DNA from: Guillardia theta CCMP2712
Lineage: Eukaryota; Protista; Cryptophyta
Assembly (NCBI RefSeq): GCF_000315625.1
Contig: NW_005434671.1
Coordinates: forward strand, 638,188 to 702,187
DNA length: 64,000 bases
Direction: 5' to 3'
Shown here: positions 1-8,256 of the stretch, piece by piece
Position numbering within the stretch: position 1 is the stretch's first letter
Layout: every line of letters begins with the position of its first letter
Position numbers and translations under genes: made by a program
Notes under the pieces: generated by a model
What the model was told of the DNA's origin: nothing
Databases searched by the model: none
What the model saw: only the letters and a program-made list of their open reading frames with translations

Positions 1-130
1 CCTCCTCCTCCTCCTCCTCCTCCTCCCTCCTCCCTCCTCCCTCCCCTCCCCTCCCCTCCTCCTCCTCCCTCCTCCCTCCTCCCTCCTCCCTCCTCCCTCC
101 TCCCTCCTCCCTCCTCCCTCCTCCCTCCTC
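1..130. repeat. (CCT/CCCT)n pyrimidine microsatellite
   Basis: Pure C/T tract built from cct and ccct units at the window start. Confidence 0.95.
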
Positions 131-560
131 GCTTAGCATCTCTCATGCAACTCCAGCTCCTGGTCAACCCCAAAGGTTGCAAGACTTCTGAGCGCGCTGC
201 AACTGCTGGGCGTGTCCTCGCGCGAAGGTGATGAAGATATTGTGGATGAGGATGAGAAAGGAAGGAGCGAGGGAAAGCGAGAGGGACCAGGCAGGCAGGC
301 GTGAGGCGCGAGGAGGAGCGAGTTGCCATCAGTCTGCCCAGTCACCGGCATCGCAGGTCTGCTCGCCACCTGGCGCGAAGATCCCAAGGCGCTCCTGGCA
401 GAGGTCTCGCTATGGGTGAGGAAGGAGAACCGCAAGACGTTGGGTGAGCCGCGCGCTGCTCTCGCTTCCTCTCACGTTGCTCAGAGGGCCTGTGGCCTCC
501 CATAGAGGAGCCGTCAAGCTCGTCGCTACAGGGAAAAGAGAGAAGGTGAAGCGAGGCAGC

Positions 561-744
561 TGTAAACTATGTCAATGATCAGTTATTAGCTAAACGACAC
601 AAAACATAAAATTTCAAAATTCTAAATTTTCCGTCGAAATTATGGATCATGGCAGACCCACAAGCCAATATTTCCTTGTGTCTGACTCGTACTTGATCCT
701 TTCCATGAAGAACAGGTTGAAGTATAACCAGACCCATGTGTGAT
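561..744 (-). ncRNA. Candidate Fanzor omegaRNA scaffold / element right end
   Basis: It lies immediately 3' of the Fanzor stop codon, where TnpB/Fanzor guide RNAs are encoded. It contains a nested stem-loop at 644-699 (GGATCA/TGATCC, CAGAC/GTCTG and ACAAG/CTTGT pairs). AT-rich sequence switches abruptly to GC-rich host-like DNA at ~560. Confidence 0.55.
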
Positions 745-1612
745 TCAAGGCCGTTTCAGAGAATCCGGTCGTGCTGGTAGAGACATGTAGCACAATAGAA
801 TATTCATAGCAGCATTGACATCACGAGACTTGATACGGTTTTGAAAACAATTGGTGGATCTGCACCATTTCAAACCCCGCACCACTGACACTTCGTCAGC
901 GAGTATACCATTCTTGTTGATTTGTTTGCGTCTCAAATCATACAATTCTTGATGACATTGATTGCAACATTTTGTCGTTCTGTATTCATCAACTGCCGTC
1001 ACCTCGAAGAAGTTCTGACATCGCCTTTTGATCCACTTTACAGGCACTGACTTCTCTGCACGCCCAGTACAACCGAATGATGCTTCAGATCTGAACCATT
1101 ACCTTTCATCTTGTTGCAGAACGTATCAATCGCCTTGTGTTTGTGGATGTAGTTATCCATCTTCAGGCGTGCGAACTTGTTTTGACGATTGTGTTCGAAC
1201 AGGATCTCGCTTAGTCTCACCACGGTGTCGATGTATCTTTCATAGTGATCCAACCGAGACGTTTTTGCTGACACTCGTGCAATATCGTTTGATGCTTCTG
1301 TTTGCCTTGTCTCCATTTTTCTAACTTCGCGTTATTCCGAGTAATATGAGACTCATGATAGTACTGCCTTCGAGTATATCGATACTGTTTTGGTTTTTCT
1401 TGACCAGGTATTTGCTCGACACCGCATATCAGTACACTGCGACCAGGATCGATTGCAATAACTCGTCTTGAGGACACATCACATTCACTTGGTTTGCTTT
1501 TCTTTGTAGCAGTATTGTCTGTCTTATGTTGTATTCTCTTCTTGAACGTCACACAGAGTGCGACCCCGTCAGTCTGTATGCTATCAACTGTCCCTTTCTT
1601 TCTCAAATTTGA
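745..1612 (-). pseudogene. Fanzor (Fanzor1-type, TnpB-family RNA-guided RuvC endonuclease), C-terminal half, frameshifted and 5'-truncated
   Basis: Three overlapping minus-strand ORFs (1217..1606, 1038..1316, 745..1047) join into a Fanzor/TnpB C-terminus. Motifs in order: IQTDGV; RuvC-I VIAIDPGR; YTRRQYYHES; ASFGCTGRAEKSVPVK; RuvC-II VDEYRTTK; zinc ribbon CCNQC...CRSTNC; RuvC-III RDVNAAMNI. Frameshifts lie near 1305 and 1082. The region has no introns and is more AT-rich than the flanks. Confidence 0.9.
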
Positions 1613-2719
1613 TTATAGCTTCACCACCGACAAGAATCGCTTATGCTTTTCTTCCAGCCTCAGCTTCATGGTGGAGGCGCTCCTGTCTGGTGGAGGCTGG
1701 AGGCGCTCCTGTCTGGTGCGAGGCGCATGACGCCCTTGCGGGCGCAAGCACTTCTCGAGCCAGAGGACAGCTCCTCCTCGGACTTTGTCGAGTCGCCCGA
1801 GGAGTCTTCGCCGGAGGTCTCCGACTCCGATGGGGGAAACATCCAGAGTGGAGCCGACGCGCCCACTGTGACGTCGGATGCCTTCGGAGAGCTTGACACC
1901 ACTGGGGTGCTTGCTGCTGGTCCGAGCTCGCCTGCCCCCGATGCCGCACAGCCCCGGTCCCTGGGCATTGATGCGGCGTCGCTGCCGTCACGGGTGGTGT
2001 TGGTCTCGGCTACCGCTGACTCGGAGGCTAGTGAGGAGGACTGGATGCGTCACCTCGAGCGGGTGTCCAGCCTCCCTCTGTCCGCTGCCCCCGGCGGACC
2101 CCCGGGCAGCGCCGGCTCCTTGTCGGCGGCTGCCCTTTCTCCGTCCGCGGCCGCCAGCTTTGCGGTGGCGGCCGCGGACGTCTCGACTGACAGTGGTCAG
2201 TCGGATGCCTCCGGGTATCGCGTCTAAGGGAGTTTCATCTCGGACGTCCCCATGCTCCTGCTGCTTGTTACCCCTCCTACCGACTGTTGCTTGACCCTCC
2301 CTGCTTGTCTGCGCGGCTTCGCGCGTGGGCTGGCGGCGCGTGGGCTGGCGGTGTCGCTTTGACCTCTCTGTCCACGTGCCGGGTCTGCTGACAGTTGCCA
2401 GCAGTGCTGGTTACTTTTGGTCTTGTTTTGTTGTGTGTGTTTGTGCAGCTTCTCGCTGTGCGCTGTGTGCATGCAGGTTTAGCTTGTTCCTGCTTTGTTC
2501 TGCTTGAGGCACTTTTTACCTTCTGCGAGTGAAACTTCCTCCTTCTGCGAGTAAACATTCTCTACATTGGGCACAGGAGCATGGTACGGCTCGAGGTGAC
2601 GCATCCAGTCCTCCTTACTAGCCTCCTCCGGTTACAAATCTTCGTCGTCCGGCTGCTATGCCTGATGACGCAGGACGCCCCCCGGCATATGTCACAGAGT
2701 ACACATACCTGGACTTGGT

Positions 2720-3813
2720 TTGCGCGCTCTCGTCGACTTGTCTCATGAGCACTTCATTCCTCCGCCTGCGCAGCGCAATGTGACTCCTCTTGTCATGCGC
2801 GTCTTCCCTCGCCATGTGCATGCTCGCGCTGCGCTGACCGATCAGCAGCGTGATATCCTCACCTTGCACAGCCGCAGGACACACTCGCTCAAGTCGCAGG
2901 ATAGGGTCTTGCAGTCTACCATCTTCGCTCATTTTCCTGAGCGAGACCTGAGCCACTCTCCGATGCGAGTCTCGAGCTACTACCCCCTCAAGGCCTTCCC
3001 GCACCGCTATGCTCAGATGCTCGACTGCTATCTCCATGGCATTCCGATCTGCCAGTGTCCGACGGAATGTGATGGATGTCAGCGCGAGCTCGATCCCTCC
3101 GTTGCTGCACATCATCTCCAGACCTGCAAACGCCGATCCTCCAAGCTTCCCACGGCGCATGACAACTGGGCCTTACTCGTACGATTCGGTCGATGCTGAA
3201 CGAAGCTGGTCTTCAAAGCGTCATCGATACAGTGGGGGATCCTCGTTCTCGACGGCAGGTACCCTCCCATCCTCATGGCCGCAAGATGAAGGGCGATATC
3301 CACATCCCTGGAATCCGCGATCGAGGGTCCGAGCAGTACGAGGGCTTGATGGCGGACGTGACGTTGGTCCACCCTTACATTGGTAGCTCTGCCGACCTGA
3401 CCAAGTGGGGGGAGGTCAACCTCGACGCCCTCCATGTTGCAGCGTCTGAGAAGATTCGCAAACATCGCGCTGCATATGCCATGACTACTCCTCCTCGAGC
3501 GTTCATCCCTCTTGCCATCTCGACGGACGGTACCCTGCATCCTGACACCCTCCGCTTCATCTGGTATCTCGCGGACATCATTGCTCAGCGCTCAATGCCT
3601 CTTGAGGATGCGGCGTTTGGTCGGCACTTCGTGCCTGATGACGGACCTGCTGCTGAGGTCTTGGCTCGCAAACGCGCCGCCACCTATCAGCGCCTCACCA
3701 TGCAGCTGACGCTGGAGGCGCTCTTGTCTGGTGCGAGGCGCATGACGCCCTTGCGGGCGCAAGCACGATGGGGGACACCCTTCGAGTGGCGCCGACGATC
3801 GGCGCGGCTGTGA
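2720..3813 (+). pseudogene. Non-LTR retrotransposon ORF fragment: CCHC zinc knuckle + restriction-like PD-(D/E)xK endonuclease; RT domain absent
   Basis: CDGC...HHLQTCKR...HD is followed, after a frameshift near 3170, by KGDIHIP...ADVTLVHP...AASEKIRKH...FIPLAISTDG...FIWYLA. This is the motif order of the RLE domain in CRE-clade elements. Confidence 0.85.
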
Positions 3814-4550
3814 CGTCGGGTGCCTCCGGAGAGCTCGACACCACTGGGGTATAGGATTTACTGGGGTGCTTGCTGCTGGTCCGAGCTCGCCTGCTTCCTC
3901 CCCGGCATCGGTCGGGTCACGCCGGTCCTTGGGCATTGCCGCGGCGTCGCCGCCGTCAAGGGCGGCTACCACTGACTCGGCTACCGCTGACTCGGAGGCT
4001 AGCGAGGAGGACTACCTCGAGCGGTACCGTGTTCCTGTGTCACCAGCCTCCCTCGGCTGCCTCCGGGTATCGCGTCTAAGGGATTTTATTCCTCCTGCAT
4101 GCTCCTGCTGCTTGTTGCTTGATTGCTTGACCCTTAGGCTGCTTGTCTGCGCGGCTTCGCGCTTGGGCTGGCGATGCCGCGTCTGGGTGCCAGCAGTGCT
4201 GGTTCTTTTCGGGCTTGTGTTTTGTGTGTGTTTGTGCAGCTTCTCGCTGTGGACTGTGTGCCTGCCGGTTCAGCTTGTTCCTGCTTTGTTTTGCTTGAGG
4301 CACTTTTTACCTTCTGCCAGTAAATCATATACCTCGCGTCTAGATAGATGGTACGCGGAGCTGGCGAGGCGTCTCCGTCCCTCACTGTGACGTCGGGTGC
4401 CTTCGGAGAGCTCGACACCACTGGGGTGCTTGCTGCTGGTCCGAGCTCGCCTGCTTCCTCCCCGGCATCGGTCGGGTCACGCCGGTCCTTGGGAATTGCC
4501 GCGGCGTCGCCGCCGTCACGGGCGGCTACCACTGACTTGGTTACCGCTGA

Positions 4551-5514
4551 CCCGAGCAGTACGAGGGCTTGATGGCGGACGTGACGTTGGTCCACCCTTA
4601 CATTGGTAGCTCTGCCGACCTGACCAAGTGGGGGGAGGTCAACCTCGACGCCCTCCATGTTGCAGCGTCTGAGAAGATTCGCAAACATCGCGCTGCATAT
4701 GCTATGACTACTCCTCCTCGAGCGTTCATCCCTCTTGCCATCTCGACGGACGGTACCCTGCATCCTGACACCCTCCGCTTCATCTGGTATTTGGCGGACA
4801 TCATTGCTCAGCGCTCGATGCCTCTTGAGGATGCGGCGTTTGGTCGGCACTTCGTGCCTGATGACGGCCCTGCTGCTGAGGTCTTGGCTCGCAAACGCGC
4901 CGCCACCTATCAGCGCCTCACCATGCAGCTGACGCTGGAGGCGCTCTTGTCTGGTGCGAGGCGCATGACGCCCTTGCGGGCGCAAGCACTCCTCGAGCCA
5001 GAGGACAGCTCCTCCTCGGACTTTGTCGAGTCGCCCGAGGAGTCTTCGCCGGAGGTCTCCGACTCCGATGGGGGAAACCCTTCGAGTGGCCCCGACGATG
5101 GGCGCGGAGCTGGCGACTCGGAGGCGTCTCCGTCCCTCACTGTGACGTCGGGTGCCTCCGGAGAGCTCGACACCACTGGGGTGCTTGCTGCTGGTCCGAG
5201 CTCGCCTGCTTCCTCCCCGGCATCGGTCGGGTCACGCCGGTCCTTGGGAATTGCCGCGGCGTCGCCGCCGTCACGGGCGGCTACCGCTGACTCGGCTACC
5301 GCTGACTCGGAGGTATAGCGAGGAGGACTACCTCGAGCGGTACCGTGTTCATGTGTCCAGCCTCCCTCCGTCCGCTGCCCCAGGCGGACCCCCGGGCAAC
5401 GCCGGCTCCTTGTCGGCGGCTGCCCTTTCTCCGTCCGCGGCCGCCCGCTTTGTGGCGGCAGCGGACGTCTCGACTGACAGTGGTCAGTCGGCTGCCTCCG
5501 GGTATCGCGTCTAA
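4551..5514 (+). pseudogene. Second copy of the RLE C-terminus plus low-complexity tail
   Basis: 4551-4988 is near-identical to 3328-3766. The frame runs on into an Ser/Ala/Asp-rich tail, which is broken at ~5314 by a small TATAG-creating indel and would otherwise end at GYRV* (5514). Confidence 0.85.
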
Positions 5515-7934
5515 GGGATTTTCTTCCTCCTGCATGCTCCTGCTGCTTGTTGCTTGATTGCCTGACCCTTAGGCTGCTTGTCTGCGCGGCTTCGCGCTTG
5601 GGCTGGCGATGCCGCGTCTGGGTGCAAGCAGTGCTGGTTCTTTTCGGGCTTGTGTTTTGTGTGTGTTTGTGCAGCTTCTCGCTGTGGACTGTGTGCCTGC
5701 CGTTTCAGCTTGTTCCTGCTTTGTTTTGCTTGAGGCACTTTTTACCTTCTGCCAGTAAATCCTATACTCCTCGCTAGCCTCCGAGTCAGCGGTAGCCGAG
5801 TCAGCGGTACCGTGTTCATGTGTCCAGCCTCCCTCCGTCCGCTGCCCCAGGCGGACACCCGGGCAGCGCCGGCTCCTTGTCGGCGGCTGCCCTTTCTCCG
5901 TCCGCGGCCGCCCGCTTTGTGGCGTGGTCAGTCGGCTGCCTCCGGGTATCGCGTCTAAGGGATTTTCTTCCTCCTGCATGCTCCTGCTGCTTGTTGCTTG
6001 ATTGCTTGACCCTTAGGCTGCTTGTCTGCGCGGCTTCGCGCTTGGGCTGGCGCTGCCGCGTCTGGGTGCCAGCAGTGCTGGTTCTTTTCGGGCTTGTGTT
6101 TTGTGTGTGTTTGTGCAGCTTCTCGCTGTGGACTGTGTACCTGCCGGTTCAGCTTGTTCCTGCTTTGTTTTGCTTGAGGCACTTTTTACCTTCTGCCAGT
6201 AAATCCTATACGTACACATAGGATTTACTGGCAGAAGGTAAAAAGTGCCTCAAGCAAAATAAAGCAGGTGGTAATGGATTTGTCTTGGCTCACAAACTCG
6301 CCGCCACCGATCAGCGCCTCACTATGCAGCAGCAATGGATTTACTGGCAGAAGGGAAAAAGTGCCTCAAGCAAAAAAAAGCAGGAACAAGCTAAACCTGC
6401 AGCTGACGCTGGAGGCGCTCTTGTCTGGTGCGAGGCGCATGACGCCCTTGCGGGCGCAAGCACTTCTCGAGCCAGAGGACAGCTCCTCCTCGGACTTTGT
6501 CGAGTCGCCCGAGGAGGAGTCTTCGCCGGAGGTCCGAGTCCGACTCCGATGGGGGAAACTTCCAGAGTGGCGCCGACGACCGGCGCGGAGCTGGCGAAGC
6601 GTCTCCGTCCCTCACTGTGACGTCGGGTGCCTCCGGAGAGCTTGACACCACTGGGGTGCTTGCTGCTGGTCCGAGCTCGCCTGCTTCCTCCCCGAAATCC
6701 ATTCCTTCCGGCATCAGTCGGGTCACGCCGGTCCTTGGGCATTGATGCGGCGTCGCCGCCGTCAAGGGCGGCTCCCGCTGACTCGACTGACAGTCATATA
6801 GGATTTACTGGCAGAGACAGTGGTCAGTCGGCTGCCTCCGGGTATCGCGTCTAAGGGATTTTCTTCCTCCTGCATGCTCCTGCTGCTTGTTGCTTGATTG
6901 CTTGACCCTTAGGCTGCTTGTCTGCGCGGCTTCGCGCTTGGGCTGGCGATGCCGCGTCTGGGTGCCAGCAGTGCTGGTTCTTTTCGGGCTTGTGTTTTGT
7001 GTGTGTGTGTGTGCAGCTTCTCGCTGTGGACTGTGTGCCTGCCGGTTCAGCTTGTTCCTGCTTTGTTTTGCTACGTTATAGGATTGAGGCACTTTTTACC
7101 TTCTGCCAGTAAATCCTATGTCTCTCTTAGGCCCTGTATAGGATTTACTGGCAGAAGGTAAAAAGTTCCTCAAGCAAAACAAAGCAGGAACAAGCTGAAC
7201 TGGCAGGCACTGCTTTGTTTTGCTTGAGGCACTTTTTACCTTCTGCCAGTAAATCCTATACTCCTCGCTAGCCTCCGAGTCAGCGGTAGCCGAGTCAGCG
7301 GTAGCCGCCCGTGACGGCGGCGACGCCGCAGCAATGCCCAAGGACCGGCGTTTGCTTGAGGCTACTTTTACCTTCTGCCAGTAAATCCATTGTGGCGGCG
7401 TGACCCGACTGATGCCGGGGAGGAAGCAGGCGAGCTCGGACCAGCAGCAAGCACCCCAGTGGTGTCAAGCTCTCCGGAGGCACCCGACGTCACAGTGAGG
7501 GACGGAGACGCCTCGCCAGCTCCGCGCCGGTCGTCGGCGCCACTCTGGAAGTTTCCCCCATCGGAGTCGGAGACCTCCGGCGAAGACTCCTCGGAGATAT
7601 AGGATTTACTGGCAGAAGGTAAAAAGTGCCTCAAGCAAAACAAAGCAAGAAGGAAACATAGGATTTACTGGCAGAAGGTAAAAAGTGCCTCAAGCAAAAC
7701 AAAGCAGGAACAAGCTGAACCGGAGCTTCTGGAGATGGCTCGCCCTCACCAGCGTCTTGAACATGAACAGCAACAAAAGCGGTGTACTTGCTCCCCCCCG
7801 ACCTTGCAATGATGGATCGTATGCCAGCCGTGCCAGTCAGATAGCGCCGAGTTAACAAAACTCTCCTGCCGGTTCAGCTTGTTCCTGCTTTGTTTTGCTT
7901 GAGGCACTTTTTACCTTCTGCGAGTAAATCCTAT

Positions 7935-8256
7935 AAAGCTGTAAACCAAGACGACTTACTTGTTTCAAGGCGGCCATGTAGCGTGTGGGACGAAGTGGGG
8001 GCTTTCCTAGCCGTCTTGCTAAGGTCCTCTCATGTCTGGATGCTTGGGTTCACATCCTAGCATACGGAAATAGTGGATACAGTCTATCTCTCATGTGCTC
8101 CTCAATTCTGGTTTCGTGTGCATTAAACTCGGTCTGCAAAAATTGTCTTTCAACAACCAAGGTCGATGTGATGTCTGCGTGACTTTGGCAAAGTACAAGC
8201 CTAACAAACTTGTGCTCCGTCATGCAAACTATGACCCAGTGAGTCACTAGTTTACA
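7935..8256 (-). mobile_element. Possible left end of the Fanzor-carrying element with a short degraded ORF
   Basis: AT-richer than the DNA that follows. TAGTTTACA (8248-8256) is the inverted copy of TGTAAACTA (561-569). A minus-strand ATG at 8223 opens MTEHKFVRLVL... No clear TSD is visible. Confidence 0.35.

Follow-up and report, generated by a model that had tools for sequence, protein, structure and literature searches.

Two Fanzor1 proteins, SpuFz1 and GtFz1, have been shown to act as omegaRNA-guided, TAM-dependent double-stranded DNA endonucleases (PMC10432273, PMC11423790), and GtFz1 (PDB 9cer/9ces/9cet) comes from the very genome considered here, that of the cryptophyte Guillardia theta CCMP2712. 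We analysed a 64-kb stretch of this genome (the window), which contains the remains of another Fanzor gene. The family to which it belongs resembles GtFz1 by its REC and WED domains, its split RuvC and its TNB zinc ribbon, and by the fact that a single gene is present, without a transposase gene. However, identity between the two is 22% and is confined to the RuvC half, GtFz1 is longer (690 aa versus 642 aa), and its third catalytic residue is Asn658 (D-E-N), whereas the family has the canonical Asp in SRDVN (D-E-D). The family element also has a 3′ tail of 161 nt, and its copy in the window is dead. In both profile and fold comparisons the family is best matched by SpuFz1 and PpFz1 (PDB 8gkh, 9cf0), which likewise have the canonical D-E-D triad, but they are fungal proteins, with only 13-17% identity to it, and SpuFz1 elements possess inverted repeats, none of which was seen in the G. 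theta family.

Three other systems are instructive. In the Fanzor1 elements CRe-1/2/3 of Chlamydomonas, 3′ ends outnumber 5′ ends and a short target motif is followed by duplications that vary between 7 and 19 bp, a pattern which was read as one-ended rolling-circle transposition (PMC3627910). As in the G. theta family, the truncated copies carry duplications of variable length directly after the motif while full-length copies have little or none, but the motif is TTTT in Chlamydomonas and ATA in G. theta. The CRe ends moreover match those of Helitron2 elements; in G. theta, a search of the genome for the Helitron Rep domain (Pfam Helitron_like_N) gave no match, the same search being blank in every control genome as well. 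In Spizellomyces punctatus, ghost omegaRNA loci keep the 3′ RNA-coding end in the absence of a working nuclease gene (PMC10432273), as does the window copy; they differ from it by having kept both inverted repeats and by being expressed, whereas expression of the relic's tail was not seen in poly(A) RNA. Lastly, ISDra2 TnpB (PDB 8h1j) has the same RuvC and zinc-ribbon core, and its guide RNA derives from the 3′ end of the element, but it is a prokaryotic protein of about 400 aa with a TnpA transposase as partner, and it is a weak fold match only (E = 6e-4).

The window copy and its parent element

A sequence-only reading of the window had proposed that three short ORFs, lying at 745-1612, splice by two frameshifts into one TnpB-like C-terminus. 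The three overlapping minus-strand ORFs do exist (1217-1606, 1038-1316 and 745-1047), their products continue one another, and base-by-base alignment to a full-length copy of the element (L021:4079-6683 (-)) revealed the two frameshifts as deletions of 1 bp and 22 bp. The extent proposed was too short, since homology actually spans 584-1653. An in-frame TAA, which is why the first ORF begins at 1606, and the absence of the N-terminal half of the gene had been missed as well. The similarity is far beyond chance (E = 1e-157 with a sibling protein in tblastn). By itself, the 100-aa product of the last ORF gives a Pfam match to Cas12f1-like_TNB (E = 8e-5) whose score, 23.2 bits, is below the cut-off of 26.3 bits; Pfam found no match in the two upstream ORFs, and when a product exactly identical to the 100 aa was sought, no record was returned. 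The features of the locus, and those of related copies, are collected in Table 1.

Table 1. Features of the window copy, with truncation points and direct repeats of other copies of the element
Feature	Position	Strand	Remarks
Whole Fanzor relic	584..1653	(-)	Element nt 1513-2605; 94.4% identity to L021 (blastn and global alignment)
Fanzor1 coding remnant	745..1652	(-)	Sibling codons ~333-642 (end of WED, RuvC, TNB zinc ribbon), in three frames
Non-coding 3′ tail, 161 nt	584..744	(-)	Sharp element terminus ...TTAGCTAATA; candidate omegaRNA scaffold
RuvC-I Asp codon (IDPG)	1448..1450	(-)	Aligns with invariant family D401; IAIDPGR at 1439-1459
RuvC-II Glu codon (VDEY)	985..987	(-)	Aligns with invariant E563; AVDEYRTT at 973-996
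RuvC-III Asp codon (SRDVN)	820..822	(-)	Aligns with invariant D618, SpuFz1 D606 and non-canonical GtFz1 N658; SRDVNAAMN at 802-828
Four-Cys zinc ribbon (TNB domain)	847..969	(-)	CxxC at 955-966, CxxxxC at 847-864
Nonsense codon, in-frame TAA	1613..1615	(-)	CAA in siblings
1-bp deletion, first frameshift	1303..1304 (~1303)	(-)	Sibling codon 450
22-bp deletion, second frameshift	1087..1088	(-)	Sibling codons 522-529; partial loss of the RuvC strand PIIAYGD, which is nearly invariant
5′ breakpoint	1654..1692		Short rearranged piece, then high-copy GC-rich repeat from ~1693
3′ end of flanking transcript, upstream DEAD/DEAH helicase gene	400..626	(+)	41-nt GT..AG intron at 443-483 (442 joined to 484)
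Starts of truncated copies	Element nt 18, 1513, 1721, 1775, 2043, 2230, 2260, 2327, 2381, 2558, 2559, 2580
Truncated copy L027	C6:871325		Direct repeat TAAGAGG, 7 bp, abutting both ends
Truncated copy L040	C191:50179		Direct repeat ATTACAATC, 9 bp, abutting both ends
Truncated copy L032	C1:756693		Direct repeat AAGC[A/G]GT, 7 bp, one mismatch, abutting both ends
Truncated copy L036	C101:172953		Direct repeat of ~15 bp, one mismatch, abutting both ends

Comparison of the copies with each other delimited the full-length element to 2,605 nt: about 515 nt of 5′ sequence, one intron-less ORF of 642 codons and the 161-nt 3′ tail. The Fanzor1 gene is its sole gene, and no transposase gene is present. 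The relic corresponds to the last 1,093 nt, so that the 3′ 42% of the element is kept, i.e. the C-terminal 310 codons and the tail. The sequence-only reading had also anticipated that intact siblings may exist in the genome and that full-length copies could be found by searching it. Both expectations were borne out: a search with the last ORF of the relic gave 67 matches, several of them 97% identical and inside open frames of 644 aa, and at least nine near-full-length copies were found, six of which have uninterrupted 642-codon ORFs (99.3-99.9% identical); L021:4240-6168 (-) is one such intact ORF. Since natural intact copies exist, reconstruction of a consensus, as had been suggested, is unnecessary. 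Altogether, the element is spread over more than 20 nuclear scaffolds.

We are thus left with little doubt that positions 584-1653 of the minus strand are a non-functional, 5′-truncated relic of a 2.6-kb multicopy G. theta element, the only gene of which encodes a 642-aa Fanzor1, i.e. a eukaryotic nuclease of the TnpB type. As a transposon remnant it is ordinary and of a known kind, and it is unimportant when taken alone, as one decayed fragment among many.

Two features upstream of the ORF may be mentioned (nt 187-410 and 386-487 of the element in L021:4079-6683 (-)). The 5′ sequence contains a tandem repeat whose copy number varies between copies, and a segment of about 100 nt immediately upstream of the start codon has 80-87% identity to more than 15 other loci; this segment may be a leader or promoter common to other Fanzor families.

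A second Fanzor1 lineage in G. theta

That the gene is a Fanzor had been proposed on the basis of its motifs, and both profile and structure comparisons agree with the proposal. A family profile, built from 13 homologues and searched against PDB, matched three proteins only, all of them Fanzor1: PpFz1 9cf0 (1.1e-21), SpuFz1 8gkh (2.5e-21) and GtFz1 9cer (2.9e-15). The IDPG, DE and RD motifs of the profile line up with the catalytic residues of these three proteins. A single-sequence search of PDB with a sibling gave no match at all, GtFz1 included. An AlphaFold model of an intact sibling (P0001; mean pLDDT 83.1) was compared with known structures by Foldseek, and ranks 1-7 were all occupied by SpuFz, PpFz or GtFz (E = 1e-19 to 2e-17, TM up to 0.63), while Cas12f, TnpB and Fanzor2 appeared only at E >= 3e-6 (2.8e-4 for Fanzor2 9b0l, and the value given above for TnpB 8h1j). 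Across 12 homologues, D401, E563 and D618 do not vary, and the Cys residues are conserved. The sibling protein also conforms to the Fanzor1 motif as defined by Bao and Jurka, D-X(125,275)-[TS][TS]-X-X-C4 zinc finger-X(5,50)-RD (PMC3627910), in the form IDPG...DEYRTTKCCNQC...WCRSTNC...SRD, where 165 residues separate D401 from T566. In a paralogue, L017, the Pfam TNB domain is above the cut-off (30.4 bits). Thus, judged by profile and predicted fold, the family is Fanzor1. Its nearest named relative is from another cryptophyte, Hanusia phi (39% identity).

The one result that could speak for bacterial TnpB DNA, present as contamination or through recent transfer, rather than for a eukaryotic Fanzor, is that the sole Pfam match is to a prokaryote-dominated domain, Cas12f1-like_TNB. 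The dispersion of the element on nuclear scaffolds, the Hanusia phi relative, the best structural and profile matches, which are to Fanzor1 and not to TnpB, and the spliced, polyadenylated host transcript which enters the relic (see below) together refute a bacterial origin, to which we attach practically no probability.

The family resides in a eukaryotic nuclear genome, the same one that encodes GtFz1. A 690-aa ORF on contig 7 is essentially identical to the PDB chain of GtFz1 over residues 2-690 (1611.6 bits), and its coordinates fit the published GUITHscaffold_7 locus. Besides GtFz1, the family thus represents a second, uncharacterised Fanzor1 lineage of G. theta. Among the supplements of Fanzor surveys, the accessible portion of the table of Saito et al. 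gives only GtFz1 loci for G. theta, and the other surveys gave no match to the family. We consider it to be of modest interest, as a young, multicopy family whose 642-aa genes occur naturally in intact form and whose active site is the canonical D-E-D; its intact copies are directly testable candidates for compact RNA-guided nucleases.

Further Fanzor1 families, with 51-54% identity, were noticed in G. theta at C72:358085 (L017), C201:4440 (L018), C29:422818 and some 15 loci of the same sort. Open frames of 590-670 aa are seen in part of them, and in one family the match is interrupted by a single TAA, possibly the sign of an intron. The paralogues L017 and L018, which belong to the 54% identical family, have only about 33 nt in common after the stop codon.

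Inactivation and decay of the window copy

As the sequence-only reading had it, the codons for the three RuvC acidic residues and for the four-Cys zinc ribbon are all present in the window. The cysteine motifs read CCNQC (955-969) and WCRSTNC (847-867). The D, E and D catalytic codons stand in different frames, however, and no complete, translatable Fanzor1 gene exists at the locus, where a member of the family is represented by a fragment of a pseudogene. The relic has lost 1,512 nt from the 5′ end of the element, among them the promoter region and codons 1-332 (the REC/WED half), and the missing part was not found elsewhere in the 64-kb window. Because the 5′ half is lost and because of the nonsense codon and the 1-bp and 22-bp deletions, the relic cannot make a nuclease, so the earlier judgement that this copy is dead holds.

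The same cannot be said of the idea that its lesions are few and its inactivation recent. Half of the gene is gone, a TAA interrupts the remainder, 22 bp have been lost from a conserved strand, and the sequence is 5.6% diverged, as compared to at most 1% among the intact siblings. The coding differences between the relic and the young copies are distributed 12/7/14 by codon position, with 10 synonymous and 23 non-synonymous changes, which is about the neutral expectation. At 35 sites the relic differs from all six young copies; 25 of these differences are private and 10 are common to other old fragments, which indicates that the copy goes back to an earlier form of the family and decayed where it now lies.

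How far do these lesions depend on the quality of the assembly? Across the 3′ junction (400-612), public contigs from three runs agree with the assembly at every base, and contigs over 779-897 carry a sibling's letter. Public reads and contigs are absent over 910-1113, 1267-1317 and 1471-1674, and the deletions, the stop and the 5′ junction are as read in one assembly. One could then suppose that the frameshifts are assembly errors and that the locus encodes a shortened, translated C-terminal RuvC/zinc-ribbon protein, the more so as the 1-bp deletion is covered by no independent read. But even with both deletions set aside, the gene would still be devoid of 332 codons and of its start, and the TAA would remain; besides, a 22-bp gap is atypical of sequencing error, the substitution pattern is neutral, and such a product is on record for no gene in other assemblies. 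We find this supposition scarcely credible. Were the 1-bp deletion an error, the copy would be dead all the same, since it would still be truncated, contain the stop and lack the 22 bp.

An excess of 3′ ends and a possible mode of copying

The copies of the element are alike at one end and not at the other. The 3′ tail ends sharply at ...GTCGTTTAGCTAATA in all of them, and the flanks beyond differ; the terminus may be written ...GTCGTTTAGCTA(ATA). Its last 18 nt were found at 22 loci, versus 8 for the 22-nt 5′ terminus, which occurs in this Fanzor family only and in no other repeat family. At least 12 copies, the relic among them, are 5′-truncated, each at its own point (Table 1), and have the same exact 3′ base. 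In three micro-remnants (C15:833034, C131:112937 and C191:50179), nothing is left of the element but its final 26-50 nt, up to the exact 3′ terminus.

Direct repeats abut both ends of four truncated copies and vary in length (Table 1). In all four, the trinucleotide ATA, which is also the one that ends the element, directly precedes the 5′ repeat. For the full-length copies, ATA-N precedes the 5′ end in each of the six that have a readable 5′ junction, and in four of the six N is identical to the flank base that directly follows the 3′ ATA. In this family, 3′ ends are in excess and truncated copies bear target-site duplications of variable length, as in the Helitron2-type non-autonomous CRe elements of Chlamydomonas. 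At the ends of the window copy, a target-site duplication was looked for and none was found.

Given the differing 5′ cut points and the exact 3′ terminus in at least 12 copies, the family probably copies itself from its 3′ end. A more specific scheme can be put forward only tentatively, and we regard it as rather doubtful: the family would spread by target-primed copying that starts at the 3′ end and takes place at ATA, in a manner similar to target-primed reverse transcription or to one-ended rolling-circle replication. Such copying would leave variable target duplications and abortive 5′-truncated copies, and would do so without a transposase of its own. A process of the target-primed-reverse-transcription type would fit the data as well as the rolling-circle reading. 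If the scheme were true, a cryptophyte Fanzor1 nuclease would be tied to replicative mobility rather than to cut-and-paste, and the many orphan 3′ ends could provide extra guide RNAs. Whatever the scheme, the 3′-end excess and the ATA-linked duplications repeat in a cryptophyte the pattern of a green alga, and this bears on how Fanzor1 elements that have no transposase move.

The 3′ tail as a possible source of guide RNA

By homology with SpuFz1 and GtFz1, the intact siblings would be omegaRNA-guided double-stranded DNA endonucleases; the guide RNA would be transcribed from the end of the gene together with the 3′ tail, and the adjoining flank would serve as guide. The tail forms a long subterminal hairpin and folds moderately better than shuffled sequences (z = -1.97). 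A scan of window positions 1-3000 against Rfam gave no credible match.

In the relic, the tail has 5 mismatches over 161 nt and is preserved as well as in active copies. This raises the possibility that the relic works as a stand-alone guide locus, comparable to the Spizellomyces ghosts (PMC10432273), in which the tail and the flank at ~564-583 would form an omegaRNA that retargets the nuclease of the siblings. The retention of the tail with its exact terminus, its folding into the hairpin and the ratio of 3′ ends to 5′ ends, 22 to 8, are all in line with such a role. However, copying from the 3′ end accounts for this ratio without any function, and the z-score of the fold is only -1.97. The element's own 5′ promoter region is absent from the relic. 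In a poly(A) RNA run, almost no sense-strand reads fell on the relic at 97% likeness, and over 584-756 minus-strand RNA is about 0-0.7 deep, though poly(A) libraries lose small RNAs. Mismatches amount to 3.1% in the tail and 3.6% in the coding part; the tail is thus conserved no better than coding sequence in decay, there is no sign that a guide role has survived, and we hold it to be very improbable that the relic is a working guide locus.

The neighbourhood of the relic

On its 5′ side, the relic abuts a cluster of high-copy GC-rich repeat units (window 1654-8000), in which contig word depth reaches about 1e5; inverted short pieces are found at the Fanzor breakpoint itself (1654-1692). No Pfam match was obtained for the neighbouring ORFs at 1643-5318 or for the ORFs of the GC-rich cluster.

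On its 3′ side, the transcript of an upstream helicase gene, which is antisense with respect to Fanzor, extends 43 nt into the relic, poly(A) being added after ~626. In 33 reads non-templated poly(A) follows this position, which lies about 17 nt beyond CATAAA. Other reads, which have different flanks before 583/584, suggest that the same polyadenylation takes place at other copies of the element. The upstream helicase ORF is at L037:1860-4952, and a weak match to DHX37_C was noted at window 323-505. Between this ORF and its last exon region lies a 2.4-kb simple repeat of CCT/CCCT (window 1-130; L037:4986-7379).
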